From positions 186,001-250,000 of the forward strand of contig JANHCV010000014.1 in NCBI GenBank assembly GCA_025594325.1: a stretch of 64,000 nt of DNA, read 5' to 3'. Position numbers and translations under genes: made by a program. Under the pieces are notes generated by a model. It was not told the origin of the DNA. It saw only the letters and a list, made by a program, of their open reading frames with translations, and ran no database searches. The stretch comes from Blastocladiella emersonii ATCC 22665. Lineage: Eukaryota; Fungi; Blastocladiomycota. Shown one piece after another: positions 13,963 through 47,125 of the stretch (position 1 is its first letter; every line of letters begins with the position of its first letter).

Positions 13963-15835
13963 ATGAAAACTGCATGCATTGATCCAAAGTCTTCACGTTT
14001 ATGCCGTTCCAACCTGCCGGCCGAGCTCGTTGCGCAAGTCATCGACTCGCGCCGTCATCCGGCAACGGCGGCGACGCGCGGCTTCGCCGAGCTTACTGCG
14101 AGCCCGACGACGATGACGCAGTAGATCTACCGGTGCTGTGTCGCGCTCAACCCGGCGCTCGGTGGCGGCCGGACGCGCGTCAATGCCAATCCTTGCGACG
14201 CGCGCTACCCGATCGAGCTGAGATGCCTTCTGTCGCTGGAGCCGTACTAGATGCAGCTGGTCGAGCGCACCCGCGCCTCAGAAACCGACTTGTTCAGCCA
14301 CCGGCTGGACCACGCGTGCCCGATGTGGGGCCTGCACACTCACGCGTAGCGCACCGAGCTTCGCGCTTGGTTCTGCTAGCTCAGACGCCATGCCCAGTTC
14401 ATTCATATCCGGCCCCAATGACGCTCCCGCCCGGCTGTTCTCGCTGCTCCAGCTCGCGTGCTTCTTCGCCGCCGTGAGCCGTCCCGCCGAGCTCGCGATT
14501 GTGCTTGACTCGCTCCTCTCGACGTGCAAGCTCGCGTGATTCATTCATGATTAGTTCGACTGGGACGCGGACTGGCGCGACGACGACGTCTGTTTACAGA
14601 CGATGTCTGCTTCCCGGATGCTTGACGTTCCGGACGGCGCGAACCAAGGGCGCGCGGTGACGCTGCTCGAGCACCTGGCTCTCGTTTGTTTCCACAGGTA
14701 GTGATACGACGTGCTCGCGGTGCTCGAGGCGCCCGAGTGCGTGCTCGACGGGGCCGCGGCCATCCGCCGTCGACCACGCTGCCGACACGCGGCTGCCCGC
14801 CGATGCCCTGAATGAGGTTTCGTGCTGACTGTTTGGCGAAACGGGCGTGTTCGCGCTGCTCGTCAAGGTGTGTCGGGATCGCCGCGGCTTGCCGATCCCG
14901 TAGCATTTTGGCTACAACCGTGTGATCCATTATTGTTCCTCATCGTTTACGTCGAGCTGGTCGCCCCGTTCCGCGCGTACGACCAGATCCTCGCTGCTTC
15001 TCCTGAACAGCGACCATCCGCAAAACGACAACGAGTTTGGCGGCTGCATCATTTACCCATCGTCTCGCTTCTCGTCATTTCCCTCCCGCGCGAACTGGCC
15101 CTCCAGCACCTCGCTGAGCCGCGGCCAGGCACTGCCGTCCCTCGCGTGCTCGGACACCTGCACGCGCTGCTTGATCAACGCGTCCGTTCCGCCACGAGTG
15201 AGCCGAGCGTGTGGTCGGCATTCGCGCTCACGCGAGCGTGGGATCTCGCGCAGCGAGTGGACTTCCACGTGGCCACTTTGCATCAACGTCCACGCATCGC
15301 ACCCTGAATTGTTCGCCGAGGTTGGCTCGCTCGCGATCCTCGCGGCCGCGGGCGGAGAGTCGCTGGTCCGTGAAGTTTTCTGTGCACTCCGTGCTCCTTG
15401 GGTTTGCGCCGGTCCTCGCGTCGTTCACCGAGCCCACTCGCAGCGCCCTCTTCTCGCACGACGCACTGGTCATGGACGCGGACGATCAACAGTTCATTAG
15501 GCTCACGTCGCGCGGATCGTTGCCAAGCTTTACTGCACAGCGCCCTCGCTCGTCATCGACGAGCTCCTGTGCGTCCGTGTGACGAGCCTGCGGCCCCTCG
15601 TGCGCGTGTTCTCACGCAGCGTACTTAATAGTGGCGCTCGCCGACATGGCTTCTCGCAGCGACCTGCGTTGTTCATTACCGGCACCAATACCGCGCAGGG
15701 GTGCGCGATGCGATGCTCGCTTAGCTGTTCAAAGCGGCCGAGGCCGCGGCCCGTCGCGACGAGCTTCGCGGCACGTTGCGACGAGCGCGAGCAACGTGGT
15801 CCGCGTGTGCTCGAGCTCGGAATTCGAGGGCGAAG
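13963..15835 (+). pseudogene. F-box-like family copy 2 (heavily decayed)
   Basis: Starts ATGAAAACTGCATGCATTGAT..AACCTGCCGGCCGAGCTCGTTGCGCAAGTC like the intact copies. Family fragments (LACF..ELAIVLD, FRAYDQILAA, LFKAAEAAARRDE..QRGPRVL) occur in shifting frames with stops and a large internal deletion. Confidence 0.8.
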
Positions 15836-16251
15836 CCCAAGGCGGGAACGGTGTTGTGTCACCCTTCGCACATTCAAGTCCTTTCACTCGCCTCCAGCGG
15901 GCTGCGAAGTGACGATCGACAGGAACACTCGATCGACGTGAATGGCGCAACGCGTGGTTTCCACAGCGTGGTTTCCACCGCACAAGAAGCCCATCCCTTT
16001 CCTTCAGGGCAAGCTTGCCAACATGTCCAGATTTCACGTTGCTCGGGGGTAGACATGAGGAAGCGCGGTGGAAGCTTGGCCACGGCGTGGGGCTGTTGGC
16101 GACAAACTACAAAGCATAAGCTGTGCCAACGCCGACGCCAGTCCAGCAGACGGAATTGATGATGAATGAAACGTTGCACAGACTCTTTGCGAGCAGCGAT
16201 TGCCCCTCTGTGGTCGCGAGGGGAGGAGAGGGGGAGGAGCGCGCCGAGCGG

Positions 16252-16263
16252 CATCAGCTGATG
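16252..16263 (+). promoter_or_regulatory. Family upstream palindrome CATCAGCTGATG, copy 3
   Basis: Perfect 12-bp palindrome followed by TGGCGCAGC, ~120 nt upstream of the ATG. Confidence 0.6.
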
Positions 16264-16385
16264 TGGCGCAGCGCCCGCTGTGAGTCGAGCGGTTGCCCTA
16301 GCGGTTGCCCTCGCCAGCCTTTGAGTTGGGCGCTTGTTGGGCTCTCGGCCAACAACCAACCTCAACGAGGCCTAGACGCAACGCC

Positions 16386-18891
16386 ATGGAAACTACATGC
16401 ACTGATCCGAGGCCCGCTCACTTATGCCTTTCCGACCTCCCGCCGGAGCTCGTCGCGCACGTCCTGCGTGTCGCCGCCCCGCGCAGCACCGTCGCCGCCG
16501 CCACACGCACGCTTGCCGAGGTCGCTGCCAACCCGACCACGCAGTGGGTCCATCGCTGCCTCACACTGCCTGACCCGATGCTGCTCCGCTGGGTGCGGAT
16601 CCGCAACCGGCTCCGCGCAGCGCTGCCCAACCATGCGCTCGTGGCGCTGCCGCTCACCGTCTTCCTCGTGCACACGAAAATGAAGTACGCGCGAGATGAA
16701 GACTGCCGCGAGCTGCGGTTCGAGAACGAGGCGGAAACGTGGGGCCCGTGCGTCCATCCCATGGACGAGGCGTTCCTCAACCGCTTCTGCCAGATCGTCA
16801 TGGCGCCGCTCGATTGCGAGTCCGAGTCTGGTCCCGGCAAAATGGCCCTGCGACTCGAGGACACCTCGATCGAGGCTCCGACTCGCTTCCTCGTGCTCGC
16901 CCAGCTCGCGTGCTACCTTGCTGCGTTTGGCCGCCCCTCCGAGCTGGCCTTCGTCCTTGCCGCTTTTTCTGCCCTCGACGACCCGTGCCCTCTCGCCCTC
17001 AGCCAGTGGATCGCGCTGGACCCGTCGTGGCGCTCGGACGCTTCGCTGCAGCGGGTTACGGAGCTATTTGGCGCCGCCGCGAACGACAAACGCACGCTCG
17101 GCGAATACCTGGTTCACGTCTGCTTCCGCTGGTCGCGGTACGACATGCTCGCCGTGCTCGAATCGTCCAAGCTTGTCCCCGACAGGGCTTCCACCGTTCG
17201 CATGCTCCTCAATGCCGGCGACCTCCTGGGACTCTGTCGCTCGGATCTGGATTGCCCGACCGGCGCTTGCGCGAAGGTCTTTCGATGGCTGTTTGGCCCA
17301 GCGGACGGCATCGAGCCCGGGATGGCCCAGCAAGCCATCAAGCTGCTCTCCATCATGTGTCCGAATGAGCACCTGTTGCCCATGATCGCGGACTTGGGCT
17401 ACGCGAAGGTCATCCGAGGTCTCTCGCAACGCGACAAGGACGAGACGCTCAAGCTTTTCCTTCCCGACGCCGACCGCGTCCGCGACATTCAGCAAATCTT
17501 TGATTGCTTCGACCAAAGAGAGAACTGGATTCTCGCGCTTCTTGCGACTTGTCATCTCTTTGACGACCAGCTCTTGCCACAGCTCTTCTGGGTGCTGGTG
17601 GCCAATCAGGACTCGCTCGTCCACGTTGCCATGGACAGCGTTTCCTGGGATAACCTCGCATCGGTTTGTGGGCTTGGTACGTGATCAGGTTCTTGCAGGG
17701 TTTACGGGACGGCTTCTCATCTATCGCCGAGTTTGTGTAGCCTTCGATCACGGAGTGCATGTGTTCGACTGCCATGCAGATGTGCAAGAGATTCCCGCTC
17801 ACTTCGTGAACATTTTTGCGCGGGACATCTGCTGCCTCCTCGCCGTGGCCCTTTCCCACGGCATCCAGCTGGCCGACGTGCTCAATACGAGCCGCCTGGC
17901 GGTGCTTCGCGACTTGAAGCTGCTCGATTCGGTGCTCGCGTGGCTGGCCACGTACGTCGGCCCGGTCGCCGTCTTCCGCGCCTACGACGAGATCATGGTG
18001 GCGTCGCTCGAGCACCTGGAGCACCCGCAAATCGAAGACGATTTCGGCGTCTCCTTCAGCAAGCTCCTCGTTGCGCTGCTTGCGCTCTCGCCCACCCGCG
18101 AGCTCGTACTCGAGTACCTCAACACTCCTCGGCACGGCACCAAGCTGCCGCGCGCGCACTGGCACCTTCACATGCTGCTGCACCCGCGCATCCGTGCCCT
18201 TAGTTGGGATGGCAAGCGGCATTCGCTTTTGCCCTTTGACTCGCTCCCCTACTGCCCTTTCACGGCGGCGTGGTTCACGCACCGCGAGGAGTGGTGTACC
18301 AACCTGGATGTGCCGCTCGACTGCTACGCGTCGCCCGACGAGTCGTTGGAAGCGGTCGGCAGACAGCTTTGTCATCCAACGCCTCGACACAAGTCGTGGC
18401 AGATTGCGTGGCGGTCGGCCGTGCACGCGATCCTCACCGAGCTGCCGGCTTTCACGCCCACGCCCGCGTCGTTCCCTGAGCCTCTGCGCCGCCAGCTTTT
18501 CTCGTCCGAGTCGCTTATCATGGCCGATTTCGTGCGTTCAGACGACCGCTGCAATCCCCGCTCACACATCAAGTGGATCGTCAAGGCGCTCCACCGCGCG
18601 GCACCCGAGCTCCTCGTCAACGACCTCCTGCGCGTCGGCGTGGCGAGCTCGCCGTGTGTCTGGCGGATTTTTCCATACGGCGCGCTGGACGGCCTGCGCT
18701 CGCCGTTGTGGCTCCTTGCGGCGGCATGCGTTGTGCTTGATCGGTACGGGCGGCAGCCCGACTTGCGCAACAAGGTCCTTGGCGAGCTGTTTGATGCGGC
18801 CGAGGCTACGGCCTGCACCGACAAGTTTGAAGCAATGATCCGCAATGAGTGCCAGCGCCGTGGCCTCAAGGCGTCGCAGTTTGGAATTTGA
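16386..18891 (+). CDS. F-box-like family copy 3 (intact, 813 aa, 2 exons)
   Basis: LSDLPPELVAHVLRVAAPRSTVAAATRTLAEVAANPTTQW. Phase-1 intron 17677-17740 (G|GTACGT..TAG|CC) fuses track ORFs 16305-17684 and 17500-18891 in frame. Confidence 0.85.
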
Positions 18892-19433
18892 GTGTGTGTG
18901 AGTTTGGGTTTTGTGATTGTGTACAAGTAGTCCTAAGAATATAATTGCCTATTTGTTTTTTGTAACCATGAAATCATTGCTCCTCAACGCGCCGGCCAGC
19001 ACGGCCTTGGCCTAGGTGGGGCGGCCCGCGGCCGCGGACTCCCTCAACGACTTTACCCGTGCGGCGCGAGTGGACCGAGGCGTAGCAGCGCACCAAGCAC
19101 AAATCCGCGCGCGTGAGCCTCGCGCGTCTTTCGCTTAAGTTCAGCCTCAACGAGGAGGATCACCGCGCACTCGTGCTATTCCTCATGAAGCTCATCGCCA
19201 TTTTTGTTTGCGTCAACACAGCTGTCGCGCTGAGGCCACCGCGACATCGGATCCAAACGCGCACGCGTCGGTCCGCGTTTCTCCTTGGCAAGGCCCCTGC
19301 TCGACTCGCGCGCGACCTCTGAGCTCTAGCAGTAGATGATGAGCTGAAGCAAAGCAAGTACAATTCTAACCAGTTGGTCTCGTCATGGACGAAACCACGC
19401 GCGAGCGGAGGAGGAAAGCGACGCGGCGGTCAT

Positions 19434-19445
19434 CGTCACCTGATG
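19434..19445 (+). promoter_or_regulatory. Family upstream motif CGTCACCTGATG, copy 4
   Basis: Followed by TGGTTCAGCCAC, ~110 nt upstream of the ATG. Confidence 0.55.
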
Positions 19446-19553
19446 TGGTTCAGCCACAAAAACGGACGGCGAGTCACTCGCGCGCTTCGGTGGCGCTTAG
19501 GCGCCTTTGACGAGTGCTGCTTCGTGCCCCTTGACAATCGAGGCACAGAAACC

Positions 19554-21850
19554 ATGAAAACTACATGCATTGACACGAGGTCCACGCGTTTGTGCCTTCC
19601 CGATCTTCCGGCCGAGCTGGTCGCGCAAGTCCCGCGCATCGCGACCCCGCGGCCCATCGTCGCCGCCGCCACACGCGGATTCGCCGAGGTTGCTGCCAAT
19701 CCAACGACGCAGTGGGTGTACCGGTGCTCCATCATGCTTAATCCAGCCTTCGGTTGGGTGCGCCTGCGGTTGAAAGCAGGGAAAACGATACCAAACGTCA
19801 TTTCGCTCGGAACGACGTTCGCATTTGGCCATTACATGAAGACAACCGCGAAGGAGATCAGTAAACTGCGCGATTCTGACAACAGCTCCGATGTGGACTC
19901 TCGCCCGTGGGGCCCGTGCATCCACGCAATGAGCTCCGCATTCCTCGCGCGTTACTGCAACCGCGCTCTTTCATCGCCAACTTCTCACATTAAGTTGGTT
20001 GATGGCTCATCAACGGATCGGGTGCACCACTCGTGGGATAAAATTCATATCCACGTTGGCTTTCGGTTCGCTACCGTTATCGGACCCTTTCCGCTCGTTA
20101 CCTTGAGCCAGCTCGCGTGCTTCCTTGCTGCCCTTGGCCATCCGTCTGAGCTTGTCGTTGTTCTCGATGCAATTGCCGGCTACGGCTACATTGATTCCGG
20201 CTCCGTTTCGTTGGAGATATGGATCGCCATGGTCCCGGACTGGACGTACGATCACGCTTGCAACTTCCTCAACGTGTTTCCAGCAGGCGCCCAGTCGTGC
20301 TCGTTCACCGTCATCGAGTATCTTACGCTCGTCGCGTACCGGCAGCTGCGACACGACACTCTTGCGCTCCTCGAATCATCCGCATACGGCTTGGACAAGA
20401 TGCGGCTCGTTCGTTGGATCGTCGACATGGGATACTTGGTCGCCATGGGCCGCACGATTCACCCCACACGTGCAACCAAAGATTGTGTCAAGACCTTCCG
20501 CTGGTTCTTTGGCGAAACCGACGAGCTGGAGCACCAGCTAGACCCAGTGGTTACGCGCGTCGTCGCGACGGCGTGCGAAAGTCACCGCGCCCTCAAAGTT
20601 TTGTCCAGCCTGGGCTATGTCGGCATAATTGCAGCGCTTTCTGACCCCGAAAAGGAAGCGTTGGTCGACCAGCTGGTCGCACCGTTCGATTTGGACGGGT
20701 CCGACGCGCTCCTGAACGCGCCAACCACCCACTTTGACTGGCTTCTGACCTTGCTTGGCGGAACCGGCCTCCTTACCAATCAAGAGCTGGGACAGGCCAT
20801 TGGGAAACTGGTTGCAGCTCACGACCAATTTGTCCACAAGCTGATACACTCCATCCTTGATGAATCGGCTGACATCGTCATCTCTGGAGGTACGCAATCG
20901 CCCATGTCTATCAAGCACTGCCGTGTGCTTACCTCGACCGTTTTGGTTTCTATAGCAATTCGTCAAGTGCTTTGGGGACTTCAGTCGGACAGCGAGCGCA
21001 TGGAACCCTCGGCCGACGTTGTTACGACCCACGCGCTCGGCATCTGTCGTCTGCTCGCGTTCGCTGCTTCACGCGGAGTTCCGCTGCCACGCGTCCTAGA
21101 TATGGCCCTGCTGCAGCAACTTCGAAGTGCGAATTCGCAACTTGAAGCTCCTTGACTCGGTTCTCCCCGCTTTAGCGATTTACATTGGTCCAGTGCTCTC
21201 TTCCGCGCGTATGACGGAATCTTTGTCACGTCCCTGGATCTGGTCAAGCTGCCTCAAGTAGACCTTGAATTTGGCGTGCTCTTCGGCAAAATCCTTGTCT
21301 CGCTGCTCGCTGCCTCGCCCACCCGCAAGCTGGTCCTCAATTACCTCGCCGAACAGCGACCAGGCATCCCACTTCCTCGCGCGCACTGGCACCTACATAC
21401 CCTCTTGCATCCAAGCGTGCGCACTGAAACCACCAAGTTCAGGTCACCTGCGGCTCTGCTTCTCGAATCGCTGTCCGTGAGCGAAAGGTCGTGGTCGTGG
21501 TTCGAGCGCGGTCGTTGGTGCTCGAGGTGGTCGCTGCCACCCAACTGTTACTCCACCGATGCCAATTCGATCACCGCGCTTCGACCTTCTGCAATTCCTC
21601 TCACTCAGGGCGAGCTGCCGCTGGCCCCGTGGCGTTTGCCGTGCGCTCATTGCTGACCGAGATCCCCAGTTTCACACCGATGCTTTCGTCGTTTCCTAAG
21701 CCCGTCCGCAATGCCATCTTCTCGCCCGAGGCGCTCATGATGGTCAACTTCGCAGGCGCCAACGACCAGTGCGATCTTTGCGCCAACGTCGCGTGGATTA
21801 TCCTTGAGCTGTATCGCGCGGTGCCTGAGCTTCTTGTCGAGAGCACACGT
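19554..21850 (+). pseudogene. F-box-like family copy 4 (exon 1 open, exon 2 frameshifted and truncated)
   Basis: MKTTCIDTR..LPDLPAELVAQV; intron 20890-20955; small insertion near 21125 and further frameshifts near 21190 and 21630. Homology stops near 21850. Confidence 0.8.
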
Positions 21851-22222
21851 GAGTGGCGCGGCGCGTTCCCTTGCTGCCAGCACTCCGCTGGTTAATTCAT
21901 TCGCGGAGCCCCTCAGTAACGAAGCTCGCGAGGAAGGAATAAAGCTGAACATCATAGTTGAAACTGACTGTCGCTCCCGTTCTCCCTACTGTCCGTGCTG
22001 CTGCCACTCGTGAGTTTACTGCCGGTCGTGATTCAATTACGCGACATGGCCGCTTTACTGAGCGCGGTCCGTAATGGATAGGCTGTGTTGTTATACTGTC
22101 CACACTTTCTCACGACCGTGACTGCAGCGAGCACAAAAGCTCCGAACCACCCGCATCTCTGAGTTCAAGCAACCTCGTTCCAGCGCAGCATTCTCTAAAA
22201 CCTACGCTTAAAACCTGTGACC

Positions 22223-23762
22223 ATGGTCTCAACCACCGATTTCGTTGCTTTCAAGGACAAGCCGACCTACAACGTACTCCTGGCGGGCACGACGGGCGTC
22301 GGCAAGTCAAGGGCGTGCAGTCTGCTGGGTGCCGAAAAGGCCGTGATTGGCCACGATGCCTCATCAACAACCAAGGGGACGCAAGTCTACCCGGTCATCG
22401 TGGCCGAGAAGTGCAAGCTCCGCCTGATGGACACGCAGGGCTTCAATGACACGGACAACCAGGCCGATGAGGACACGTTTGTGTCGATTCTCGAGACGCT
22501 CGCCGAGCACGGCATTCACGAGATCCACCTGATCCTGTGGTTCAACGACCCTTCAAAAAAAAAGCTTCTGTCGCTGGTCAAGGCCGCCAACTTCATCAAG
22601 TCGTTTGCCGATTACACGGACCACGACATCTCCAAGAACGTCGTCATCATGTACGAGTCGGTTAGCATGGTTGTTTGCCTCGGCACCAAGGAGGCCCTCG
22701 TAGAGGCGTTGGGCTGTTCGTAGGACGCAGTTTCGCATTACTTTGCTCTCATCAAGTCAATCACGAGTCCCGAGGACGGCATCTACACCGAGAACGACTA
22801 CCGCAAGCTCCTAATCCAGCTCTTGTCGGAGTCTCGCGAGCCAGTCACGGTCGTACAACGTGACTTTGCCTGCGCGAACTGCAGTGCGACCGGCGATCCG
22901 CGGGTTATCAAAGGCGGCTGCCACATCGGTTTCGACTCGGGCCATCTTGGCGGGAGCGGCGGATGCGACGCGCCACTCGCGCGAGGCCGTCCGTGTTCAT
23001 GGCCAGCGCGAGATGATCCACGACAACGACAAGATCAAGCTGCACAAGGACACGCAGCGGATCCACGGTCCTCGAATCCAGCGACACCTCAGCGACGAAA
23101 AGCACCACTCGGGGTTCAACGTTCGCACCGCAACGGAAAGGCAAGCGCCAAACCTTGCTTCGCTGTTCGCGGGGGTCGCCCTCAGCTCATTTTTCCCCGC
23201 AGCCATGAACCTCATCGAGGCCGCATCTAACTTGACTACCGTCGTCAGGCACCGGGAGTGCATCAAGTGCACCCGGTCCCCCAACGACGAGGGCTGCGTT
23301 TACACCTGCTGCGACAAGATGAAGCCGTGTCGGAGTAATTGCAGCGATTGCTGGGAAGACCTCTCGGACGAAACCGCAAACAGCAGCCTCGGCTGTGTCA
23401 TGGCGTGCTGCAAGCAGAAGCCCAACGAGCCGTGCGTCACGGCCTACAAGTGTTGCGAAAAGCTGGTCAGCTCGAACCCCGCGCCGTGCACGCCCATCTG
23501 CAGCCTCTGCAAGCGGGACCCGAGCTCGCCCGGGTGCAAGTACTCGTGCTGCGACACCGAGGGCGGGTGTATCACGACGTGGTCGTGCTGCGACCAGGTC
23601 GCGACCAAGGATCAGTTCACCATCATGTCGTACGGCGAGTGCGGCCACCTAAGCACCGACGCGCCCTGTGTCGCGCTGTGCCAGCTGTGTGAGCTACCGA
23701 AGGGCAGCATGCCGGGCTCCGAGTGCGGCATCGCCGAGCACAACTTTTTCAAGTCGATTTAG
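22223..23762 (+). CDS. AIG1/GIMAP-like P-loop GTPase with CxxC-GDPR motif, His-spaced segment and Cys-rich C-terminal repeats; possibly disrupted
   Basis: G1 GTTGVGKS, G2-like SSTT, G3 DTQG. TAG at 22721-22723 is either the end of a 63-nt intron (22661-22723) or a premature stop. The frame continues to ACANCSATGDPR, then shifts near 22950-22975 into the Cys-rich ORF ending at 23762. Confidence 0.65.
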
Positions 23763-23930
23763 GCTCGAATGCGCTACGCGAGGTGTTTCTTCGCGTCCGA
23801 CCTCGGAGCGCTGTTTGTCGCTCGTTCGAAACCAATACAAATGTACTTCACCAACATTTATTTGTTTTCGCCATTCTTGAATCTTCTACGACTGAGTTCC
23901 TCTGTCCCGACCTGACATCGAGTGACTGAA

Positions 23931-31861: not shown

Positions 31862-32827
31862 TTTCTCCCTGTCCTGGCGCGCGTCGTGCTTCGTTCGCGT
31901 CAAAGCGTCCGCTCGCTCGCGAGGAGCTGGTTCGAGCGATTAAAGTAACATGATTCCGACCTCAACCATTAAGTCTGTCGCGTTTTCGCAAACTTGATCC
32001 GCCGCAGTGCACCGTACCAGACCTGCGTCCGGCCGGACCGGTTGCCAGCTCGGCGCGGCCCTGGACGACGGCGGTGTTGGTCGCGGCGATCGTGGCGCGG
32101 ATCCCTGCCTGATGGCGTTCAATGCGAAAGAAATGGAGGAGCTGCGAGACAAGCTCGCGGTTGGGCATGTTGCGGTTGCACCGAGTGCGGGCTGGTCAAA
32201 CTCAACGTCGTCACGGTGGTGGGCGCGGGGTCGAGCGGCACGTCGAAGCCGTGGCCGAGTCGACCTGGCGGACACAATTCAGCAACTTAGGTGAGCGTTC
32301 ATGGCAAGGGTGACCGTGGATCCTCGGTAAACGGGAGCAGAAGCGACGAAGCCTTGCGAGTGGCGGCCAGCCGACGCCGCATCAACACCGTGGCGCACGT
32401 GGTGGCGCATCGCGTCGTGGCCTTCGACGCGACCCGGCGAGAAGGAGCGCGTACAGGACGCAATCTTAGCGCTGTTTTCCGTCAGCAGCTTCCTTGTGCG
32501 AGACGCTGTGCGCGCGCCCGCGGCGCTCGGGCGGCGCCTCGCGCGCGTGGTACCCGAACGGCCTATTGGCGTCGGTGTCGATGACCAGGTCGCACGCGTG
32601 CGAGTTTGACCACCGACTGGCCGTGTGGGCGTGGTGCCCGGAAGCAGCGGCCCACGTATCTCGCGGAGTGGGCGCCCGGTCCGATCGGCAAGCGCGTGCC
32701 CGCGCTGGCCACGCATGGCGCGATCAGATCAGTGACTAACACGTTTTCGGGACGCGCTCCTCATATAAACCCGGGACGCCTTCGCCACTCCGTCAACCTT
32801 TCACCCTCACTCCAAGTACTCAACACC

Positions 32828-34107: not shown

Positions 34108-36581
34108 CTAAAAGCTGGCCTGGAGCACGCGCAGCCCACGGTATTCGCACTCATTCCGCATCATCGCGCGGAACGCGTCGCCGCGAGCCGTGGCCTTGGC
34201 CGCCGTAAACAGCTCCGCAAGTACCTCGTCCCGCTTGACGAAATGACTTTGGTACTGGTCCAGCACGACGCAGGCCGCCGCGAGAAGCCACGTCGGCGAG
34301 CGCAGCCTGTCCAGAGCGCCGCGCGGGAGCATGCGCCAGATACCTCGCGGACTTGTTACGCTGACGCGCAGAAGATCGTTGATAACAAGCGAGGGAGCTG
34401 CGTGATGAAGCTCCTTAATGATCCACGCAACGTTGGATCGACGGCCAAATTGACCGTCAGAGCCCGCGAAATCAACCATGAAAAGTGCCCCGGGCGAGAA
34501 AACGGTGTCGCGGACGGGCTCGGGGAACGACGAGAGCATCGGCGTGAAGCCAGGAACCTCGGTCAGCACCGAGCGCACAGCGAACTGCCACGGGGCCAGC
34601 TGCGGCTCGCCCGATGTCGTAGGGATTGCAAACGTTCGAACCGCATCAATCAAGTCGGCATCTGAACCGTAACAGTTGGACGGCAGCGACCACTGTGAGG
34701 ACCAGTGGCCGCTCTCGAGCCACGACCACATCTGCTCGCTCATGGGCAGCGAGTGGAGGAGAGAGGCCGCCGGCGACTTGATCTGGGTGGTGTCGGCGCG
34801 GACGTGCGGGTGAAGCAACGTGTGCAGGTGCCAGTGCGCGCGCGGTAGGGCGGTACCCGGTCGCTGCTCGGCAAGATACTCGAGCACCAACTCGCGGGTG
34901 GGTGAGGCGACGAGGAGCGAAACAAGTAGCTGACCAATAAAGACGCCGAACTCGGAATCGACCTGAGGTACTTGGAGATTTTCGAGTGAAGCGGCAAAGA
35001 TCTGGTCGTACGCACGGAAGACGGCAACTGGGCCAATGTACATGGCCAGAAACACGAGAACCGAGTCCAGTAACTTGAGGTCGCGAAGTTTCAGCAATGC
35101 GGCCATGTCGAGCACCTCCGAGAGCGAAAAACCGTGTGAGATGGCGAATGCGAGCAGACAGCACATCCACCGCGCTCGGGTCTCAACGACCCGCTTTCGA
35201 GGTGAACCGATTTTGTTCGATGATTCGAAGTCCTCAATAGCGTGAGAAAGGACTGTTCGAGATTGAAAATGGTCAGAAAATCGCCTTGAGTTTTTTCTAT
35301 CAATGCACCCGTACCTTTGCTGAACATGGAAACCATGTGATCTCGAGAGATGCCATCAATCGCATCACCCACCAACGGGTCATCGCACTGGATCAGGACC
35401 CAAAGTGCCACGGCAAGCTGATCGTCGTCAAGGGCTCCACTCACTGCGAGCAAGGCAATTTTCCAGTTTTGTTCCTTCAATCCGGAATACAAGAAGGTGT
35501 ACTCTTGGCCGAAGAAAATGTCGGCAACGTCACAGAAAAGGTCTTCCTTAGTAACCTCCGGCAACTGCCAGACCAACCTCGGGTAACCAAATTCGACAGC
35601 AACGGACAGTGCGCGGGCGTCATCGCAAACCTTGGCGAGCAGCCCGATTGCGAACGGGGCCAGCTCAGGATCGAGGTTGTCGGCAGTCCCAAAGAAACGC
35701 CGGATAATCGCTTTGAAGGCATCAAGTGGAACATCAGGATTAACGCGATGATCAATATCATGAAAGTAGCTCGTATGGAGGATTCGCCAAGCGGACGAAG
35801 TCATGTCGAGGCCGTAATCGGGATTTTCGAGAGCTACGAGGGTGTCGAGCCGCCACCACCGGTAGCACACTGTAAGGAGGTATTCGACGAGTGTGAGCTT
35901 GGTCTCGGCTCTCTCCTCATCGAGCGCGCTAGCGTACTTTTGGCGCAATTCGCTGCGCCACGAAATATCCAAGTCGACCCAACTCCGAAAGGTACGCTGG
36001 AAGTTTACGAGATCAGGAACAGCGCTGAGCAGGGTGTCAAGTTCCTCGGGGCGACCAAAGGCGGCGAGGAAGAAAGCAAGCAGACTAAAGGCCATGGAGC
36101 GCACCAGACCCTCGACATGAGTGGTTTCATCTCGAGAGCTGCAAGTTCCGGGTTCGAGCATTGGTTCCCCGCTTCGCGGCAGCAGTTGGTGCCGGCAAAA
36201 ACGGACAATGAAGTCTTCGTTGAGCGGGTGAACGCAAGGGCCCCGCGGGAGGGTCTTATGCTTACGTTGCATGGCTCGTTTCGCCATGTACATGAGGAAC
36301 GGAGTGATTGATCCAGGGCCGCTGAGCTCGATTGGAGTCTTCCAATCGTCTGTAAGGCTCAAATAAAAGTAATGCCACCCGCATAGCATCGGATAGAGTG
36401 CAACGGTGCAGCGGTAGACCCGCTGCGTTGTCGCGTTGGCAGCGATCTCGTTAAACCCGCGGGTAGCTGTCGGAACGACGATGCGCGGAGCAGCGAGACG
36501 AAGGACTTGCGCGACGAGCTCGGCCGGAAGGTCGGAAAGCCATAATTGAGCAGGCCTCGGATCAATGCATGGAGTTTTCAT
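34108..36581 (-). CDS. F-box-like family copy 6 (intact, 803 aa, 2 exons)
   Basis: MKTPCIDPRPAQLWLSDLPAELVAQVLRLAAPR. Phase-1 intron 35253-35314 (GTACGG..CTGAC..CAG) restores the frame into the ORF ending at 34108. Confidence 0.85.
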
Positions 36582-36671
36582 TGCGTAGAGGTCTATCTGA
36601 ATGTCATTCGGGGAGCGTTTACGTCGTCGACGAGAAGGCCGAGACGAAGCGCGGCCAAGGTGGCTGAACCG

Positions 36672-36683
36672 CATCAGCTGACG
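36672..36683 (-). promoter_or_regulatory. Family upstream palindrome, copy 6
   Basis: Minus strand CGTCAGCTGATG-CGGTTCAGCCAC, ~90 nt upstream of the ATG. Confidence 0.6.
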
Positions 36684-36782
36684 TCGATCAGAGCAGCCAT
36701 CTTCTCCTCACCCACGCCTCGACGCTGCACGCTAGCCTCGGCGTGGGCTTGCTTCCATGTTCAGGTCGATGCGACGCGTCGC

Positions 36783-39393
36783 TCATGCACAATTCGCCCT
36801 TTGAGGGGCGACGATTCCATTCGCTTCACTGCGAGTTGTGGGCTCGCTCCAGGAACCCGGAGCTGGGGAGTGGGCGAGGACAAAAGCTTTAGATTTAATT
36901 GACAAATACTCTAAAGAACCAGAAAGCTCGGCTTGGAGCACACGCTGCCCACGGCGCTCGCACTCGTTATTCATCATGGCGCGGAACTCCTGGCTGCGAG
37001 CCGTGGACTCGGCCGCCTTGAACAGCTCCGCGAGCGCCTCGTTGCGCACAACGATGCGGGCGCGGTACCGGTCAAGGATGACGCAGGCAGCCACGAGAAG
37101 CCACGACGGCGAGCGTAGCCCGTCGAGCGCGCCGCGCGGGAGCGTCCGCCAGGCGCTTCGCAGGCTCGTTACGCTGACGCGCAGGAGTTCCTTGACGACA
37201 AGCGACGGCGACGCGCGGTGCAGCTCCACGATGATCCACGCGGTGCTCGAGTGAAGCCCGCGTTTGTCATCGGAGCGCGCGAAGTCAGCGAGCATTAGCG
37301 CCTCGGGCGAGAGAACGGAGCGTCGAATCGACTTGGGGAACGACGTGAGAATCGGCGCGAACCCAGCAATATTGGTCAGCACGGAGCGCACGGCAAACTG
37401 CCAGGGAGCCAGCCGCTCGCCATTTGGGGCCGCGGGGATTGCGAACATGCCCGTCACTGCAAGCGACTCGGCGAGCGACGCGCAGCAGTTAGCTGGGAGC
37501 GACCAGCTGAAGCACCATTCGTTTTGCATGATCCACGACCGTGTGCGCAGGCTGAGAGGAAGCGAGTCGAAAAGCGCGAAGGCCGAGCATCCGCTCGTGC
37601 TACTCGTGGCAGCACGGACGCGCGGATCGAGCAGCGCGTGCAGATGCCAGTGTGCGCGCACCAGGGCGGTACCCGGCCGTTGTTCTCCAAGGTAGTCGAG
37701 AACGACGCCGCGGGTGGGCGAGGCGATGAGCATCGAGACAAGGAGTCGGCCGAAGAACACACCGAAGTCGGCGTTGCACTCTGGCACTTCAAAATTCTCG
37801 AGGGAAGCTTCAAGCATGTGGTCGTAAGCGCGGAAGACGGCGACCGGGCCCACGTAAACGGCCAGGAACACGAGTACGGGGTTGAGCAGCTTGAGGTCGC
37901 GCAACTGCAGCAGGCCGCCAATGTCGAGCATCTCCGTGAGCGGAACCCCACGCGCGACGGCCATCGCGAGGAGGAAGCAAAGGTCGCGCGCTCGGGCCTC
38001 AGCGACGCGCCGCTTGAGCTCATTGAATACGTCGCGCGCTTCAAACTCGGAGAGTGCGTGGTAGAATGCTACACGGGAGCAATTGTGAGGGGCGCGGATG
38101 TTGACACGAAATAACTGATGGTTTGGTCGTACCAGCAGCGAAAAGGGACTCCAACTGATGCTGTGGGATGCTGTCAATCACCTTGGAAGTGAGCGGATCG
38201 CCGCCCTCAATGAGTTTCCAAACGGCCTTGGGCATAAGCCCGTCATCCAGTAGACCGTTCGAGGCAAAAATTACAAGCAACCAGTTCGACCTCTTGTGCT
38301 GCACGGTAATGAGATCGTCCATGCCGTACAAATTGTAGTTTACGAGCCCGTCCAAAAGCGTTCTTGTTTCCGTAGACCCAAACCTTGAAATAGCCTCGTT
38401 GCAGCCGAATTCGTCCAGCAGCGGCAGCACACGGCTGTCCTGGAACGCGTTGACAAGTAGTTGCACAATGTAAAAGTTATCCCGACGCTCAAGCATGCCG
38501 GGATCGTTAAAAAGCCAGCGCAGTGTTTTCGTATAGACGTCCACTGACAAGCGCTCGTCGACATGGTGATCCATGCTAAAGAAGCAGCCCGGCCCAGAAA
38601 CGTGGTCGATTGCCGCTAACTTGTCCAAGCCGTAATTTGGGGTTTCGAGGAGCGCGAGCACATCGTATCGCCACCGACGGAAGCAAACGAGGAGCAGGTA
38701 TTCGAGCGGAGACATCTCCAGTTCACGACCCCCCTGGTCCAACAAGCTGAGCATCCATTCCGAGTCGTCATACCGCCAGTCGACATCCAAGACGGTCCAG
38801 TCGCCGAGAGGAAGCTGAAAGGATTGGAGCTTGCCAGCGGAGAGCAGGAAGTCAAGAACCGTCGCAAGCTCGGCGGGCTGGCCAACAGCGGCAAGGAAGC
38901 AAATGACCTGGCCCAAAGAATTGTAATGGAACGACAAGTCAACGGTATCGGGCTGTTTGTCCCGGGCCGAAATGAGCCGTTGGCAGAATCGTGCAAGAAA
39001 GGCCCCGTTCATAGGATGAACGCGCGGACCCCATACGGAGCACGGGTTGAGACATTGTGCACCAGTGACTTTGGCTTCCGAGATGTGGACACGCTTTGTG
39101 AAGGCCGTGATGTATTCGCCCAGTGGCACGTCGCTACCAAGCTTGACTGGCTTGCGTGCACTACGGCGCCTGGTACCCTTACGAACCCAGCCGCCGAGAA
39201 CCGGGTTGAGCAAGACTGAGCACCGGTATACCCATTGCGTCGTCGGATTGGAGGCGACTTCGGAAAAACCGCGTGTGGTGGCGGCGACGGTGCTGCGAGG
39301 GGCAGCGAGGCATAGCACTTGCGTGACGAGCTTGGCTGGAAGGTCGGAAAGCCATAATTGAGCAGGCCTCGGATCAATGCATGTAGTTTTCAT
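36783..39393 (-). CDS. F-box-like family copy 7 (intact, 848 aa, 2 exons)
   Basis: MKTTCIDPRPAQLWLSDLPAKLVTQVL. Phase-1 intron 38069-38132 (GTACGA..TAG). Confidence 0.85.
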
Positions 39394-39481
39394 TGCAAAT
39401 AGGTCTATCTAAACGTCATGCGAAGAGCGACAGCGGCTCCGAGCCGGCCGGGACGAAAGGGCTGTCGATGTGGCTGCGCCA

Positions 39482-39493
39482 CATCAGCTGACG
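39482..39493 (-). promoter_or_regulatory. Family upstream palindrome, copy 7
   Basis: Minus strand CGTCAGCTGATG-TGGCGCAGCCAC, ~90 nt upstream of the ATG. Confidence 0.6.
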
Positions 39494-39720
39494 TCGATCA
39501 GCGTGGCCATCTCCTCCTCCGCGCGTCCTGCCTTTCGTGTGCTCTGGCTGTGCTCTGGCGGTTGCGGGCTACTTTTTGTCTCATTGTGTTCAAGCGTGTC
39601 AAGTTTTTTTTGTCCGAGGCCCTCGTCGCCTCGCGACTTGGACCAGCGAGCAGTAGCGACGCTCACAGGATGGACGGAGCAGCGGCGGAGTGGTGGTGTA
39701 CAATAGATTTGCATTCATAG

Positions 39721-42169
39721 CTACTCAAGCATAACAGAAAGCTCAGCCTGCAGCACGTGCAACCCGCGGCATTCACACTCGCTGCGCATCATCGCGCAGA
39801 ACTCGTTGCTGCGAGCCGTGGCCCCGGCCGCCGTGAACAGCTCCGCAAGTACCTCGTTCCGCTTGACGAAATGACTTTGGTACTGGTCCAGCACGACGCA
39901 GGCCGCCGCGAGAAGCCACGACGGCGAGCGCAGCCCGTCGAGAGCGCCGCTAGGGAGCATGCGCCAGATTCCGCGCGTGCTCGTCACGCTCACGCGCAAG
40001 AGATCGTTGACGACGAGCGACGGCGACGCGCGGTGCAGCTCCACGATGATCCACGCGGTGCTCGAGTGAAGCTCGCTCTGGTCGTCCGCTTCGGCCGTGG
40101 GCGGGACCTCGGTTGACAAGGCAAACTCGCGAAAGGATTCGGGAACCGATGCCATCGTTGGCGCGAAGCCGGGTATTTCGGTGAGCAAGGAGCGGACGGC
40201 AAACTGCCACGGCGCCAGTTGTGAATTGAAGGGGATCGCTCGCTGACCCGCCACTGCAAAGGATTCGGCGAGCGACGCGTAGCAGTTAGACGGGAGCGGC
40301 CATTCCAGGCACCAGTCGGCACGCATGACCCACGATCGCATGGTTTGGCCGATGGGGAGTGACTCAAAGAACGCGTAAACGGACCAGCCCTCGTTGCTGT
40401 TGGCGACGGTGATGCGTGAGTGGATCAGCGAGTGCAAGTGCCAGTGTGCGCGACGAAGTGCGGTGCCCGGCCGCTGCGTAGCGAGATATTCAAGGACGAG
40501 TTCGCGTGAAGGAGATGCGGAGAGCAGCACGACGAGTAGTTTGCCGAAGAAGACAGTCAAAGCGGGGTCCACCTGCGCATCTTTAAATTGCTCAAGAAAG
40601 GTGGCAATAATCTCGTCGTAAGCTCGAAATAGGGCGACAGGACCAACGAAAACGGCCAAGAACACGAGCACGGAATCGAGAAGATTCAAGCGCTGCAAAC
40701 GCACCAAAGTATCCATGCGGAAGAGTCGCGACACCGGGCATCCGCGCGAAATGGCGAACGCAAGAAGGCAGCACACATTGCGCGCGCGGGTTGCGGTAAT
40801 GTGAGCGGTGAGCTGCTTGCGCCTGTCGTGCGACTTAAATCCAAGGAGCGCGTAGAGGATGGCTACACCGTGGCAGTAATTAGTCACCTTGCGGCCCTTT
40901 TGTCAACAGAGAAGACGCACCGCCGGCGCAAACATCCGCCACCTTGTCTACTGGAATGCTGCTGATGACGTTGTGCGTGTACGGCTCGCGGTCTTCCAGC
41001 AGCCTCCAAACGCTCTGTGCGAGGCAATCGTCGTCGAGGAGGCCGTTCAACACGTGAATGATAATGACCCAGTTATCGCACTCCCCGCGGTCAAGAAGCA
41101 GCATGCGCACATTGCCGGAGCAGGAATACGAGAGAAGCTCCATGAGAGTGTTCTTGTTGTGCTGAGGAAGAGCCGCGATCGCGTCGTTTATGCCAAGCTC
41201 GTCCAAGATGGGCAGTACGCGGTCGTCCTCGAACATGTTCACAAGCAACTGGACAACAGAGGGTATGTTGTTATGGCCAAGCATGCTAGGGTCACCAAAG
41301 AACCAGCGCAAGGTCTTGGTGTAGGTTTCCACGGGAAGATCTTCGTCAGCCTTGTGGTTCATGTAAAGCAGGGCACCCAGGTCATAGCAGCGCAGGATGG
41401 CGGCAGACTTCTCCAGTCCGTACTCGGGTGTCTCGAGCATTTCAAGCACATCGTGCCGCCACTGCCGGTAGCAGACGAGAAGTAGGTACTCAAGGAGCGA
41501 TAGTTCCTCGTTGGTCTTGTCCTCGTCACCGTCCTCGTCCAACAGCTCGCGAATCCAGAAGTCGTCCTCGGCGAGGCAGTCTACATCCAAGCTAAACCAC
41601 TTGGCAAGTCCGGACCTGCAGGAGGAGAGTTTTCCGACAGAAAGCAGGAAGTCGAGAACCGTTGCGAGTTCCGCGGTTTTGCCCACGACGGCGAGGAAGC
41701 ACGCCAGCTGGCCGAAAGTGTCGAGTTGCACCGAGGTCTCTTCGGAGTGGTTGTCGACTATTGCGACGCGACGCTGGCAGAATTGAGCAAGAAGAGTCTC
41801 GTTCAAAGGATGGACGTGTGGACCCCAGACAGGGCACGCGTTGTTCTGTGTGTGAAAACCGTAATTACGGCATGAAAAGAATTCCAAGTAAGGATGCAGC
41901 GGCAGACTGCTGTCCAGCTCAATAGGTTTCCGCGCGTTGGAATGGTGGACACCTTGGCGCACCCAGCCGCCGAGGACCGGGTTCAGCATGACCGAGCATC
42001 GATAAACCCACTGTGTCGTCGGGTTGGCTGCCACCTCGGCGAAACCGCGGGTGGCCGACGGGATGACTTTGCGCGGAGCGGCGAGGCGAAGCACCTGCGC
42101 GACGAGCTCGGCCGGGAGGTCGGACAGCCATAATTGAGCAGGTCTCGGGTTAATGCATGAAGTTTTCAT
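39721..42169 (-). CDS. F-box-like family copy 8 (intact, 796 aa, 2 exons)
   Basis: MKTSCINPRPAQLWLSDLPAELVAQVLRL. Phase-1 intron 40863-40920 (GTGCGT..CTAAT..TAG). Confidence 0.85.
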
Positions 42170-42260
42170 AGCTTTTAAGTCGTTCTGAGCATCATACGAA
42201 GAGCGTGAGCGTAATCGTCGAGACGGCCGTGACGAGGGCGTTGCAGAGGTGGCTGCGCCA

Positions 42261-42272
42261 CGTCAGCTGACG
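42261..42272 (-). promoter_or_regulatory. Family upstream palindrome, copy 8
   Basis: CGTCAGCTGACG (perfect palindrome) followed by TGGCGCAGCCAC on the minus strand, ~90 nt upstream of the ATG. Confidence 0.6.
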
Positions 42273-43249
42273 CCGATCAGCACACAGATCTCATTGCCAG
42301 TACCTCCACCACTCACTCCGTTCGGGTGTCAACTGTGCGGGGCTTTGCCCAAGTGCCCTCTCGCCGCGATCACATGGCACTATTGACGCGTCGTGGACGC
42401 GCGATGCAAGGAACACATCGTTCATGAACAGGGAGACACCGAACTCGCCTCAGGTGCAGCGCTCACTGAAGTCGTGCTTCGGATCCGTCTTACGCAAAGG
42501 GCCTCGCGAGCAGTGGGTTGCGACGCGTTAGAACCACGCGTTCGAGTTCTTGCGGCACGGCTACATCCTCTCACCTTTCCACGCCCTTCCTGCTCTTGAG
42601 CTGGATCAAGTCAACTACGGACGGACGTGGCGGCGCAAGCTGAAAGTCGCTGAATGGATTACCAGTCAAGCTGCTGTATGTAGCGACTCCCCGTGCAGCG
42701 AGTTGCGCTCACGCGCGCACAAACGCGGCCAGCCACGCTACAAGGATGGTGCTCGTGATGGAGCGCTAGCGCGCCTTGATCGTGTGCGCCTAGTACCCTC
42801 AAACGCGCCTCAGTGCAGCATACGCGCACGTAGCGCGTATCGCCAGCGCGCTCGAGGCAACTGAGATCGGATTTGCGACGGACGCGCCAGGGCGAGCCGC
42901 TCGCTCACAGCAGCATGCTGATATTCTCAATGAGCCGAAAAGAAAGTAGTCAGCGATTGTGCAACGGAGCGTACTACGCACAGCGAATGTGCGCGACGAG
43001 TCGATCTCGACTAACGCATCGATCTTCCGCCAAGGAAGCACTCAACGATGATGGCGTTCGCGTCGCACGCTATGATCCAGCTTGAGGCCTTGAGTGAGCT
43101 CGATTCCTTGGGCACGGAAGAAGAGAGCTCGGATGAAGCGGACCTACGGTGGAAGGATCGTGAAAGGTCGACGCGGGTTACGGTGCCCACGGGATGTCGT
43201 TGACGGCGACGCGAGACACCCTAGCGCAAACAAATACCGTGTGCGTCAT

Positions 43250-44180: not shown

Positions 44181-44452
44181 TTGCATAGAGTAAATGAGCT
44201 TCATTGAAGAAGAAGAGCAAATGGGAGGGGAGCGGAGCGGAAGCGAGAGCCGAAGCGAAGTGGCGCAACGCGACACGGGGGAGTGATGTCATTGAGAAAA
44301 GTGTGACTGTAACGTGACGAGCGTTAGCCAGAAAATCGCGGTCACTATAGCTTGGGCAAAGCCCCGCATTCTTTCCCCGCCCCGCTCCTTTTCTCAGTTC
44401 TCTCGCCGTTGTAGTTTATTTTTTGCATCCAGGACTCTGACTTATACACTAT

Positions 44453-47125
44453 TTATGACGAGTTTAACTGTCGAAGCCGCATTCCCTGCTCAAGCACGCG
44501 CAGCCCACGGTATTCGCACTCGCTGCGCATCATCGCGCAGAACTCGTTGCTGCGAGCCGTGGCCCCGGCCGCCGTGAACAGCTCCGCAAGTACCTCGTTC
44601 CGCTTGACGAAATGACTTTGGTACTGGTCCAGCACAACGCAGGCCGCCGCGAGAAGCCACGACGGCGAGCGCAGCCCGTCGAGAGCGCCGCTAGGGAGCA
44701 TGCGCCAGATTCCGCGCGTGCTCGTCACGCTCACGCGCAAGAGATCGTTGACGACGAGCGACGGCGACGCGCGGTGCAGCTCCGCAATGATCCACGCGGT
44801 GCAGGATCGAAGTCCGCGTTGGCCGTTGGAGCCTGCGAAATTGGCCATGACAACGGCCTCGGGCGAAAGAAGCCGCCGGGTTGACTCGGGGAACGAGGTA
44901 AGCGCTGGCGTAAACCCAGGAATCTTGGTGAGCAGCGAGCGCACGGCAAACTGCCACGGGGCCAACCGCGGGTCGCCCTTGGTACAGGGAATCGCGAGCG
45001 TGTTCACCACGGAAAGCGATTCAGCGGCCGACGCGTAGCAGCCGACTGGCAGGGACCATTGCGAGCACCACCCGCCGCGCATGATCCAAGAGCGCGTGCG
45101 CGGGCTCATGGGAAGCGAGTCGAAGAACGCGAATGGCGACCACGCGCTCGGCTTGCTTGTCGCAGCGCGGACGCGCGGGTGCAGCAGTGCGTGCATGTAC
45201 CAGTGCGCGCGCGGCGAGTTGGTAACAAACCGCCGCTCGGCGAGATACTCGAGGGCGAGGTCGTGGCTGGGCGACATAGCGAGCAGCGAGACCAGAAGCT
45301 GTCCGAAAAGCACGCCGAAGTCGTCGTCTGCGCAAGCCTGCGACTCCGTTTCCTGGTCGTCCATGCGACGTTCATCAGCGAGCATCTGGTCGTACATGCG
45401 AAAGACCGCGACGGGGCTAATGTAAACGGCCAAGAACAAGAGCACCGGGTTGAGCAGCTTCAAGTCACAGAGGAGCGGCAACGCGGATGTGAAGAGAATG
45501 TCGCTTGACAAAACCCCGCGCGAAATGGCGAGCGCAAAGAGAGTGCAAATGTCCTTGGCGTGGGTCTCGACGACGAGTAGCGTGGGCGTCGCATGCTCGT
45601 CGCGCTCTGCAAAGGACGTCAGTGCGCAGCGGAACACTACACGAGCGACACCTGTTAGACTCTCGCGCGATCATGTAAATTGTACGAGTAGATCACGTAC
45701 CCTCGCGACAAACGGCAGCCAAACTCTTCTGCGGGATGCTGCCAAGTACCTTGTCCAAGTACGGATCCCCAGCTTCAATCAGCCTCCACACAGCCAACGA
45801 AAGAAGCTGATCGTCAAACATGCCACACACAATGTGAAGCCCAAGGACCCAGTTCTCGCTCCTGTACCGGTCGTCACGGATGATCTTCAACACATTCGTG
45901 TAGCATTCGGAGAAGTCCAGGGCAAGCTCTTGCCGGTCCGGCCACGGGAGCGCCGCGACCAAATCGGCGTAGCCAAACTCGTCAAGGAGAGGTATGACAC
46001 GGCCGTCCTCGATCGTGTCCGCAAGCAGCTTGACCATCCACCACGCTCGGTCGCGGCTGAAGATCTTGGGGTCGCCAAAGAACCAGCGCAGCGTTTTCGT
46101 GTAGATTTCCACTGGAAGCTTCTTGTGCACTTGGCCCCCCTCCATGCAATACAAGAATCCGAGCTGGTCGACGCGGAGGGTAGCAGCGGCTTTATCCAGG
46201 CCGTACTTGGGGGTCTCGAGCAGGGCAAGCATGTCGTAGCGCCACCGGCGGAAGCAGACGAGGAGAAGGTACTCGAGGAGCGAGATTGGTTTGTTGGTAT
46301 TTATGGTCGGATCGAGCAGGTCACCAAGCCACAGGGATACCTTGGGACAGGCCTCCACATCCAAGTCGATCCAGTCGCGAATGACGAGTCCGGTGGACGT
46401 CAACTCGTTGCGGGAAAGGAGACAATCGAGAATCATCGCGAGTTCCGCGGGCTGGCCGACGGCCGCGAGGAAACACGCCAGTTGGTAAATGGTGTCGAGA
46501 TGCGACGAGCGAGTGTTGACATTCAGGGTGATGCGTTTGCAAAAATGGGCAAGAAAGACCTCGTTCATGGGTGTTGCGAGTGGGCCGGGGCCAGGGGTCG
46601 GAGACATCACGTGTGGTGCTGCCGATCACCGCTTCGATCAACGCCACTACTCCGCTGCATCGGGTTTGTTCTGTTCTATTTGAGGGAGTGATAAACACCA
46701 TGATCTTGTCTTGTGCGACCAAAGGACTTGCTGCATTCAACAATGGGATGAGCGCGCGGACCCCACGCGGGGCACCGAACGCCCGGCTTCGTAGACACGC
46801 CAAATCGTTCCAAACTATAGTTGCGGCGCGCGAAGCTCTTCAAGTACTCGTCCAGCGGGAGAGCGTCGCTCAGCTTGATCGTCGGTACGGAGTCAAACCA
46901 AAGGAATACATCCCCGTCCCAGCCGCCAAGTTCACGGTTAAGCATGACCGTGCACCGGTAGACCCACTGCGTTGTCGGACCGGCGACGATCTCGGCGAAC
47001 CCGCGGGTGGAAGTCGGGATCACGTCGCGCGGAGCGGCAAGTCGAAGGACGTGCGCGACGAGCTCGGCCGGGAGATCGGAAAGGTATAAATGCGTGGAAT
47101 CCGGTTCAATGCATGGAGATTTCAT
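44453..47125 (-). pseudogene. F-box-like family copy 9, interrupted by a solo LTR
   Basis: MKSPCIEPDSTHLYLSDLPAELVAHVL; intron 45637-45700. Removing the 171-bp insert plus one 5-bp TSD copy restores WGPRAHPMNEVFL and an in-frame 810-aa protein. Confidence 0.85.
46572..46742. mobile_element. Solo LTR of an LTR retrotransposon, 171 bp
   Basis: Termini TGTTG...CAACA, flanked by a 5-bp TSD ATGGG at 46567-46571 and 46743-46747. Confidence 0.8.

Follow-up and report, generated by a model that had tools for sequence, protein, structure and literature searches.

A birth-and-death tandem array of two-exon genes for F-box-like proteins with a predicted helical body in Blastocladiella emersonii

What do the tandemly repeated genes in one part of the genome of the blastoclad Blastocladiella emersonii ATCC 22665 encode, and what might their products do? 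The stretch analysed here, hereafter the window, covers 64 kb (GCA_025594325.1, JANHCV010000014.1:186001-250000). A reading of its sequence alone had described an expanded family of proteins with an F-box-like N-terminus and an unrecognised body, and had proposed that they are adaptors of SCF (Skp1-Cul1-Rbx1) ubiquitin ligases. We find a gene family, as yet known from B. emersonii alone, that forms a tandem array evolving by birth and death. The best explanation as a whole, to which we assign a probability of about 0.6, is a family of F-box-like SCF adaptors with a helical body, maintained in such an array.

Nine homologous copies were recovered by tblastn with both exon products of copy 7 as queries against the window (E down to 1e-137, which places their homology far beyond chance), all at the positions given by the sequence-only reading. 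Copy 1 falls outside the coordinate range of that reading's entry (13963-47125). Four of the nine are intact (copies 3, 6, 7 and 8), and the other five are decayed or partial (copies 1, 2, 4, 5 and 9):

Copy 1, 2598-5210, minus strand: divergent, 25-37% identity; N-terminal motif 5055-5210, N-half 3841-5210, C-half as three frame-shifted pieces within 2616-3658
Copy 2, 13963-15902, plus strand: decayed pseudogene, shortened, with matches scattered over several frames
Copy 3, 16386-18891, plus strand: intact, 813 amino acids; exon 1 16386-17676, intron 17677-17740, exon 2 17741-18891
Copy 4, 19554-21841, plus strand: pseudogene; exon 1 open, intron 20890-20955, exon 2 broken
Copy 5, about 32966-33694, plus strand: truncated; N-half core only, profile positions 92-337
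Copy 6, 34108-36581, minus strand: intact, 803 amino acids; exon 1 35315-36581, intron 35253-35314, exon 2 34108-35252
Copy 7, 36783-39393, minus strand: intact, 848 amino acids; exon 1 38133-39393, intron 38069-38132, exon 2 36783-38068
Copy 8, 39721-42169, minus strand: intact, 796 amino acids; exon 1 40921-42169, intron 40863-40920, exon 2 39721-40862
Copy 9, 44453-47125, minus strand: interrupted; intron 45637-45700, exon 2 open

Exon 2 of copy 4 has an in-frame stop at 21153-21155 (65 codons in), followed by frame shifts, and the final ~90 amino acids are missing. Copy 5 is without both the F-box-like motif and the C-half. An unrelated sequence of about 150 bp (roughly 46587-46741) splits exon 1 of copy 9, and contigs built from three public sequencing runs on DNA of the same sample cross this insertion without differences.

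The apparent modules of two open reading frames (ORFs) are single two-exon genes. A short intron lies at an identical position in six copies (3, 4, 6, 7, 8 and 9). In the intact copies it is 58-64 nt long, in phase 1 and bounded by GT-AG, with the donor G/GTACG (GTGCG in copy 8) and a YAG acceptor; a CTAAC branch point is visible in copy 9. Removing the intron in silico yields uninterrupted products of 813, 803, 848 and 796 amino acids for copies 3, 6, 7 and 8, with a junction that aligns gap-free, and the size of about 800 amino acids and the four spliced copies named from the sequence alone were thus correct. The exon-1 frame of copy 1 ends at a matching ...FG/T junction, which suggests the same intron position there. 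The intron of copy 4 (66 nt) is in frame and stop-free, so that the ORF of this copy reads straight through it. An upstream in-frame ATG in copies 6 and 9 was rejected as the start because its frame is not conserved in the other copies, and MKT was therefore taken as the start.

The alignment consensus contains the N-terminal string and all body motifs of the sequence-only reading, in the form of WGPCVHPMNEAFL, QLACFLAAVGxPAEL, LLEYLLLVCFRxWRYDxLALLETPxYGLD, LVFLAVYVGPVAVFRAYD, RAHWHLH, APWQFAVRS and GALDGLRSPSWLLAAACV. The N-terminal motif spans about 50 residues (L-x-L-S-D-L-P-A-E-L-V-A-Q-V-L-R-L-A-A-P-R-x-x-V-x-A-A-T-R-G-F-A-E-V), within which the pattern L-x-x-LP-x-E-L is almost invariant in the family. 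It was located as follows:

5055-5210, minus strand: F-box-like motif of copy 1
13993-14118, plus strand: F-box-like motif of copy 2
16410-16583, plus strand: F-box-like motif of copy 3
19578-19754, plus strand: F-box-like motif of copy 4
36381-36557, minus strand: F-box-like motif of copy 6
39193-39369, minus strand: F-box-like motif of copy 7
41969-42145, minus strand: F-box-like motif of copy 8 (residues 9-67)
46925-47101, minus strand: F-box-like motif of copy 9

Across 20 N-termini from five arrays of the family the consensus is L-x-L-x-D-L-P-x-E-L-L-x-x-V-L-x-L-A-x-P-R-S-x-V-x-A-A-T-R-E-L-A...W. At least 90% of these 20 diverse N-termini retain L8, L11 and P25 of the motif, and P12 is retained in at least 90% of an earlier set of 12. 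E-L-[LV]-x-x-V-L is likewise conserved, and the features of an F-box start (L-P-x-E-[IL], spaced hydrophobic residues and a Pro/Asp turn) are all present. The order of elements also matches that of an F-box: LP comes first, then helix 1, a turn at Pro, helix 2 and a third helix of basic-aromatic character. As in F-box proteins, the motif stands at the N-terminus, here ahead of an all-helical solenoid in products of about 800 amino acids.

When 30 N-termini were compared with Pfam at E<=10, the only families matched were PF12937 (F-box-like) and PF15966 (F-box_4). These were five sub-threshold matches (E 0.037-0.83), each running from profile position 1-3 at LP, among N-termini that are mutually related and hence not independent trials. 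Whole family proteins gave only scattered single matches to unrelated families. The confinement of the N-terminal matches to one Pfam clan, set against this scatter, is unlike noise. A language-model search queried with residues 8-68 gave F-box for every one of its ten top-ranked named clusters, with a top score of 0.92 (a search whose statistics are not measured for partial proteins). AlphaFold2 places helices in copy 8 at residues 20-29, 35-39 and 41-47, right after LP and at the positions expected for F-box helices H1-H3.

Several results weigh against an F-box. The Trp of the canonical third helix is replaced by Phe or Leu, and the alignment covers only the first half of the Pfam F-box profile. 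A hidden Markov model search, which the sequence-only reading had put forward as a check, brought no Pfam F-box model to its gathering score (best PF12937, E=0.037, 14.2 bits vs 24.3), and six canonical 70-residue N-termini of the window had no Pfam match at E<=10. Profiles of the motif and the N-half, run against PDB sequences, matched no F-box protein at E<=10, and AlphaFold models the motif with low confidence, at a predicted local distance difference test score (pLDDT) of 50-60. Skp1 binding by the motif, as well as splicing and expression of the genes, are at present predictions from the DNA. The alternative that survives best draws on the same results, namely that every F-box sequence match is sub-threshold, that the PDB profile searches are blank and that the motif model is of low confidence. 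It holds that the family is functional but carries no F-box: the motif would serve as a helical handle peculiar to this lineage, for another partner or for localisation, on scaffolds unrelated to ubiquitin ligases. However, the weak signals converge on one clan among 24,736 Pfam families, in register at LP, the language-model neighbours agree with an F-box, and position and architecture fit F-box receptors. We consider such a handle unlikely. Of the F-box claim in the sequence-only reading, the LP pattern, the exclusively F-box Pfam matches, the language-model neighbours and the helices stand, whereas a match at the Pfam threshold or in the PDB does not. We favour an F-box-type fold for the N-terminal region as likely, and put a real Skp1-dependent adaptor role at even to somewhat better than even odds.

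The product comprises the N-terminal motif and two all-helical regions, one per exon, both of which were modelled from copy 8. The N-half model has a pLDDT of 74 and a predicted template modelling score (pTM) of 0.73, with residues 120-416 mostly at 80-92. The C-half model, also all-helical, is weaker (pLDDT 67, pTM 0.60), and its five models disagree. Foldseek found no PDB structure at E<=0.001 for the body. The best matches, with template modelling (TM) scores below 0.3, were generic ARM, HEAT, TPR, PPR and importin solenoids, and no ankyrin protein was among the 50 best PDB matches listed. In the wide search with VIA-align the top Z was 7.4, the background that the tool states for helical models, and several ankyrin proteins reached Z 5.3-6.3 over 180-230 residues, likewise at background level for such models. 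A shape search of the ESM Atlas gave TM scores below 0.5 throughout, fold searches with the C-half gave nothing above noise, and the C-half profile and one distant motif found nothing relevant among PDB sequences. Exon products of the window had no Pfam match at E<=1. The body appears from the models to be a helical solenoid without an assignable family. That the body could not be assigned to a known domain family had been noted from the sequence, and this was borne out by Pfam, PDB sequence profiles, Foldseek and VIA-align. A match to a well-described domain family or to a transposon protein, which that reading had named as evidence that would count against it, did not turn up.

Among the AlphaFold DB clusters, the best N-half match is A0A1Y2I444, an uncharacterised protein of 783 amino acids (E 1.6e-3, probability 1.00; TM 0.51 by query), with model residues 1-413 aligned to 2-454. 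Its overall length is like that of the family products, and the fold match begins at residue 2. Two further uncharacterised proteins of the same accession block, A0A1Y2HRL7 and A0A1Y2I842, also match the N-half fold. We take this A0A1Y2 block to be from Catenaria anguillulae, another blastoclad. None of the three was recovered by the sequence profile search, and the C-half model does not match them. In BFVD, about 40 of the best 50 matches belong to families of F-box or ankyrin proteins, and almost every one of these comes from Pandoravirus or Orpheovirus; the BFVD matches are weak (E 0.008-0.16, TM <=0.28), and a common GC-rich composition may contribute to them.

Two further interpretations of the body were considered. 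An ankyrin body is suggested by language-model neighbours at 0.86 (second tier), VIA-align Z of about 6 and the weak BFVD matches, but this is resemblance only: there is no Pfam Ank match at E<=10 in 24 family sequences, and no detectable sequence repeat. An internal duplication looked suggestive when exon 2 was aligned over exon 1 with MAFFT, but it was rejected: hhalign gave it a probability of 0.2%, and eight candidate repeats, compared as profiles, fail to match one another.

Searching 1.84 billion representative proteins with the N-half profile (hmmsearch) returned nine matches at E<=0.001, all from B. emersonii ATCC 22665, a restriction to one species that is bounded by database coverage of blastoclad genomes. 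Word-based searches of 5.8 billion clusters found only P0001, the model of copy 3. Six-frame profile scans of seven further loci, fetched from the same genome, gave these counts:

L001, contig 9: 4 copies
L005, contig 9: 2 copies
L002, contig 12: 3 copies
L003, contig 12: 5 copies
L007, contig 13: 6 copies
L004, contig 14: 1 copy
L006, contig 14: 1 copy

The wider family thus comprises at least 31 copies on at least four contigs, the nine of the window included. Distant members have the N-terminal motif and the N-half core in common, and the exon-2 region was found only in the subfamily of the window, its duplicate in L004 and one copy in L007. One protein of L001 (P0006, 1425 amino acids, 10001-15104) is made up of a tandem pair of complete family units, whose motifs occupy residues 8-52 and 694-724; this may be either a true double-unit gene or an annotation merger of two neighbours.

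The family is poorly represented in existing gene models. GenBank holds a variant model of copy 3 (KAI9152447, P0001, 778 amino acids), a 256-amino-acid protein for copy 5 (P0003) and a 273-amino-acid fragment model within exon 2 of copy 7, and has no gene model for copy 6 or copy 8. Copy 1 is fused with the neighbouring POP7/Rpp20 gene into a protein of 790 amino acids annotated as 'ribonucleases P/MRP protein subunit pop7' (P0002, 2337-5256, minus strand), which carries Rpp20/Alba domains. With three of the four intact genes absent or fragmentary in GenBank and copy 1 mis-fused, proteome surveys undercount the family. The same contig carries, about 39 kb upstream (L004, 9947-13933), a second version of copy 1 that is at least 90% identical and has the same POP7 fusion (P0010, 814 amino acids), so a segment with both genes was duplicated. 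The B. emersonii genome paper mentions neither this family nor RNA-seq or transcriptome data (PMC9730499).

The array is surrounded and interrupted by ordinary genes, among them those for an acyl-CoA dehydrogenase, a GCD14-type tRNA methyltransferase, a dynein-related AAA protein and an RRM protein. G+C in the window ranges over 57-74%, with 57-62% in the array region (13000-48000) and 67-74% in the flanking housekeeping genes. An ORF inside the array (22217-23762, plus strand) encodes an AIG1/MMR_HSR1-type GTPase, with MMR_HSR1 above threshold and AIG1 just below, and is followed by a Cys-rich ORF without a Pfam match. To the left of the array is a head-to-head gene pair whose TRP4/TRP5 label comes from the sequence-only reading and is unchecked. 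An inverted repeat of 602 nt (29047-29648 and 31286-31887; 98% complementary, with nested shorter inverted repeats) divides the plus-strand block (copies 2-5) from the minus-strand block (copies 6-9).

These surroundings bear on a second alternative, which sees the copies not as host genes but as members or descendants of a mobile or viral element (a giant-virus F-box/ankyrin repeat family, for instance), multiplied by transposition or integration. The lower-GC island, the transposable-element debris and inverted repeat inside the array, and the predominance of Pandoravirus and Orpheovirus F-box/ankyrin families in BFVD would fit such an origin. However, the BFVD matches are at the weak level given above, perhaps owing to GC-rich composition. 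Pfam identified no transposase, reverse transcriptase or integrase domain in the window exon products or family proteins, and no terminal repeats flank the copies; a repeat scan showed only the coding regions and an upstream element to be common to them. The copies also have in common a spliceosomal intron with the fungal GTACG donor, their synonymous divergence is saturated, and the array both contains and adjoins housekeeping genes. A mobile or viral origin is thus improbable.

The four intact copies have amino-acid identities of 40-55%, synonymous divergence (dS) of 1.07-1.34, which is saturated, and ratios of nonsynonymous to synonymous divergence (dN/dS) of 0.31-0.49. Frames of about 800 codons have remained open despite saturated dS, and we infer selection on the protein. 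This selection is purifying, though relaxed. Averaged over pairs of copies, identity reaches 74% within residues 1-40 and about 70% within the C-terminal 80 residues, and it is 19-48% across most of the N-half body. Conservation peaks in the N-terminal motif, and divergence of the helical body is rapid. C-terminal conservation is due in part to gene conversion, for which the following tract was identified:

39752-40051, minus strand: 3' gene-conversion tract of copy 8, with partners at 34124-34423, 36937-37236 and 44493-44792

Along about 300 nt of exon 2, copies 8 and 9 have an identity of 93-100%, compared with 35-75% elsewhere, and copies 6 and 7 have shorter tracts in common with them. At 44493-44802 the public-run DNA contigs break and word depth rises to 2-4 times that of the rest of copy 9, which fits a conversion tract that is near-identical in copies 8 and 6. 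The same contigs show one A-to-G difference from the assembly at 44636. The suggestion that the family is lineage-specific and turns over fast is borne out by the five decayed or partial copies, the patchy gene conversion and the restriction of matches to the same species.

A 26-nt non-coding element, GACGTCAGCTGATGTGGCGCAGCCAC, was identified about 50-135 nt before the ATG of six copies, and a degenerate version precedes copy 2:

16250-16275, plus strand: element upstream of copy 3
19432-19457, plus strand: element upstream of copy 4
36660-36685, minus strand: element upstream of copy 6
39470-39495, minus strand: element upstream of copy 7
42249-42274, minus strand: element upstream of copy 8
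47201-47226, minus strand: element upstream of copy 9

The element holds a cyclic-AMP-response-element-like ACGTCA beside an E-box CAGCTG. It was found neither in the rest of the window nor in three further arrays (L001-L003), and in a shuffle control none of 100 shuffles reached three matches. Its conservation while synonymous sites are saturated points to a shared promoter or 5'-untranslated-region signal. That the family is mostly dead, its long frames being relics that survived by chance or gene conversion, fits the five broken, truncated or frame-shifted copies and the absence of most copies from the GenBank annotation, but is highly improbable given four products of about 800 amino acids open across saturated dS at such dN/dS, an intron and splice sites that were kept, and an upstream element conserved where synonymous sites are not.

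If the family consists of F-box-like SCF adaptors, the N-terminal motif would be a divergent F-box that docks on Skp1, and SCF ubiquitin ligases would use the proteins as interchangeable receptors for their substrates. Substrate binding would fall to the variable helical solenoid, which would diversify to meet different targets, and the conserved promoter element would switch the gene set on together. The substrates could be the organism's own regulators in the zoospore and sporulation cycle, or foreign proteins. A more speculative extension, which we hold to be doubtful, is that at least 31 F-box-like receptors with a new helical recognition domain, co-induced through the shared CRE/E-box-like element, form a diversifying degradation repertoire against changing targets (viruses, parasites, selfish elements). 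This would be the fungal counterpart of the F-box surveillance families in nematodes and plants. Work is under way to establish B. emersonii as a model for phototaxis and the zoospore cell cycle. If the motif binds Skp1, the species would possess its own fast-changing set of ubiquitin-ligase receptors, whose recognition domain belongs to no known fold family.

To our knowledge, lineage-specific F-box expansions have not been reported so far from early-diverging fungi with zoospores. The combination of an F-box with ankyrin-type repeats has a further example in Legionella AnkB. The F-box-ankyrin proteins of Pandoravirus and Orpheovirus are like the B. emersonii family in their F-box-like N-terminus, helical-hairpin solenoid and multiplied paralogues. 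The family differs from them in having no Pfam ankyrin match, no internal repeat, TM scores to them of at most 0.28 and intron-bearing fungal genes. Expansions of F-box receptors are known from Caenorhabditis (F-box with FTH/FBA2) and plants (FBA, kelch, LRR) (PMC8665587, PMC8120010, PMC3719486). Like these, the B. emersonii family is large and species-specific, forms tandem clusters with many pseudogenes under birth-and-death evolution, and combines a conserved N-terminal adaptor motif with a fast-diverging C-terminal recognition part. The nematode and plant families have Pfam-recognised F-boxes and known substrate domains, whereas here the motif is sub-threshold, the body matches no family, Skp1 binding is putative and the family has been found in one blastoclad species only. 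The principle is thus already known from these systems, and the novelty lies in the lineage and in a helical body of no known family.

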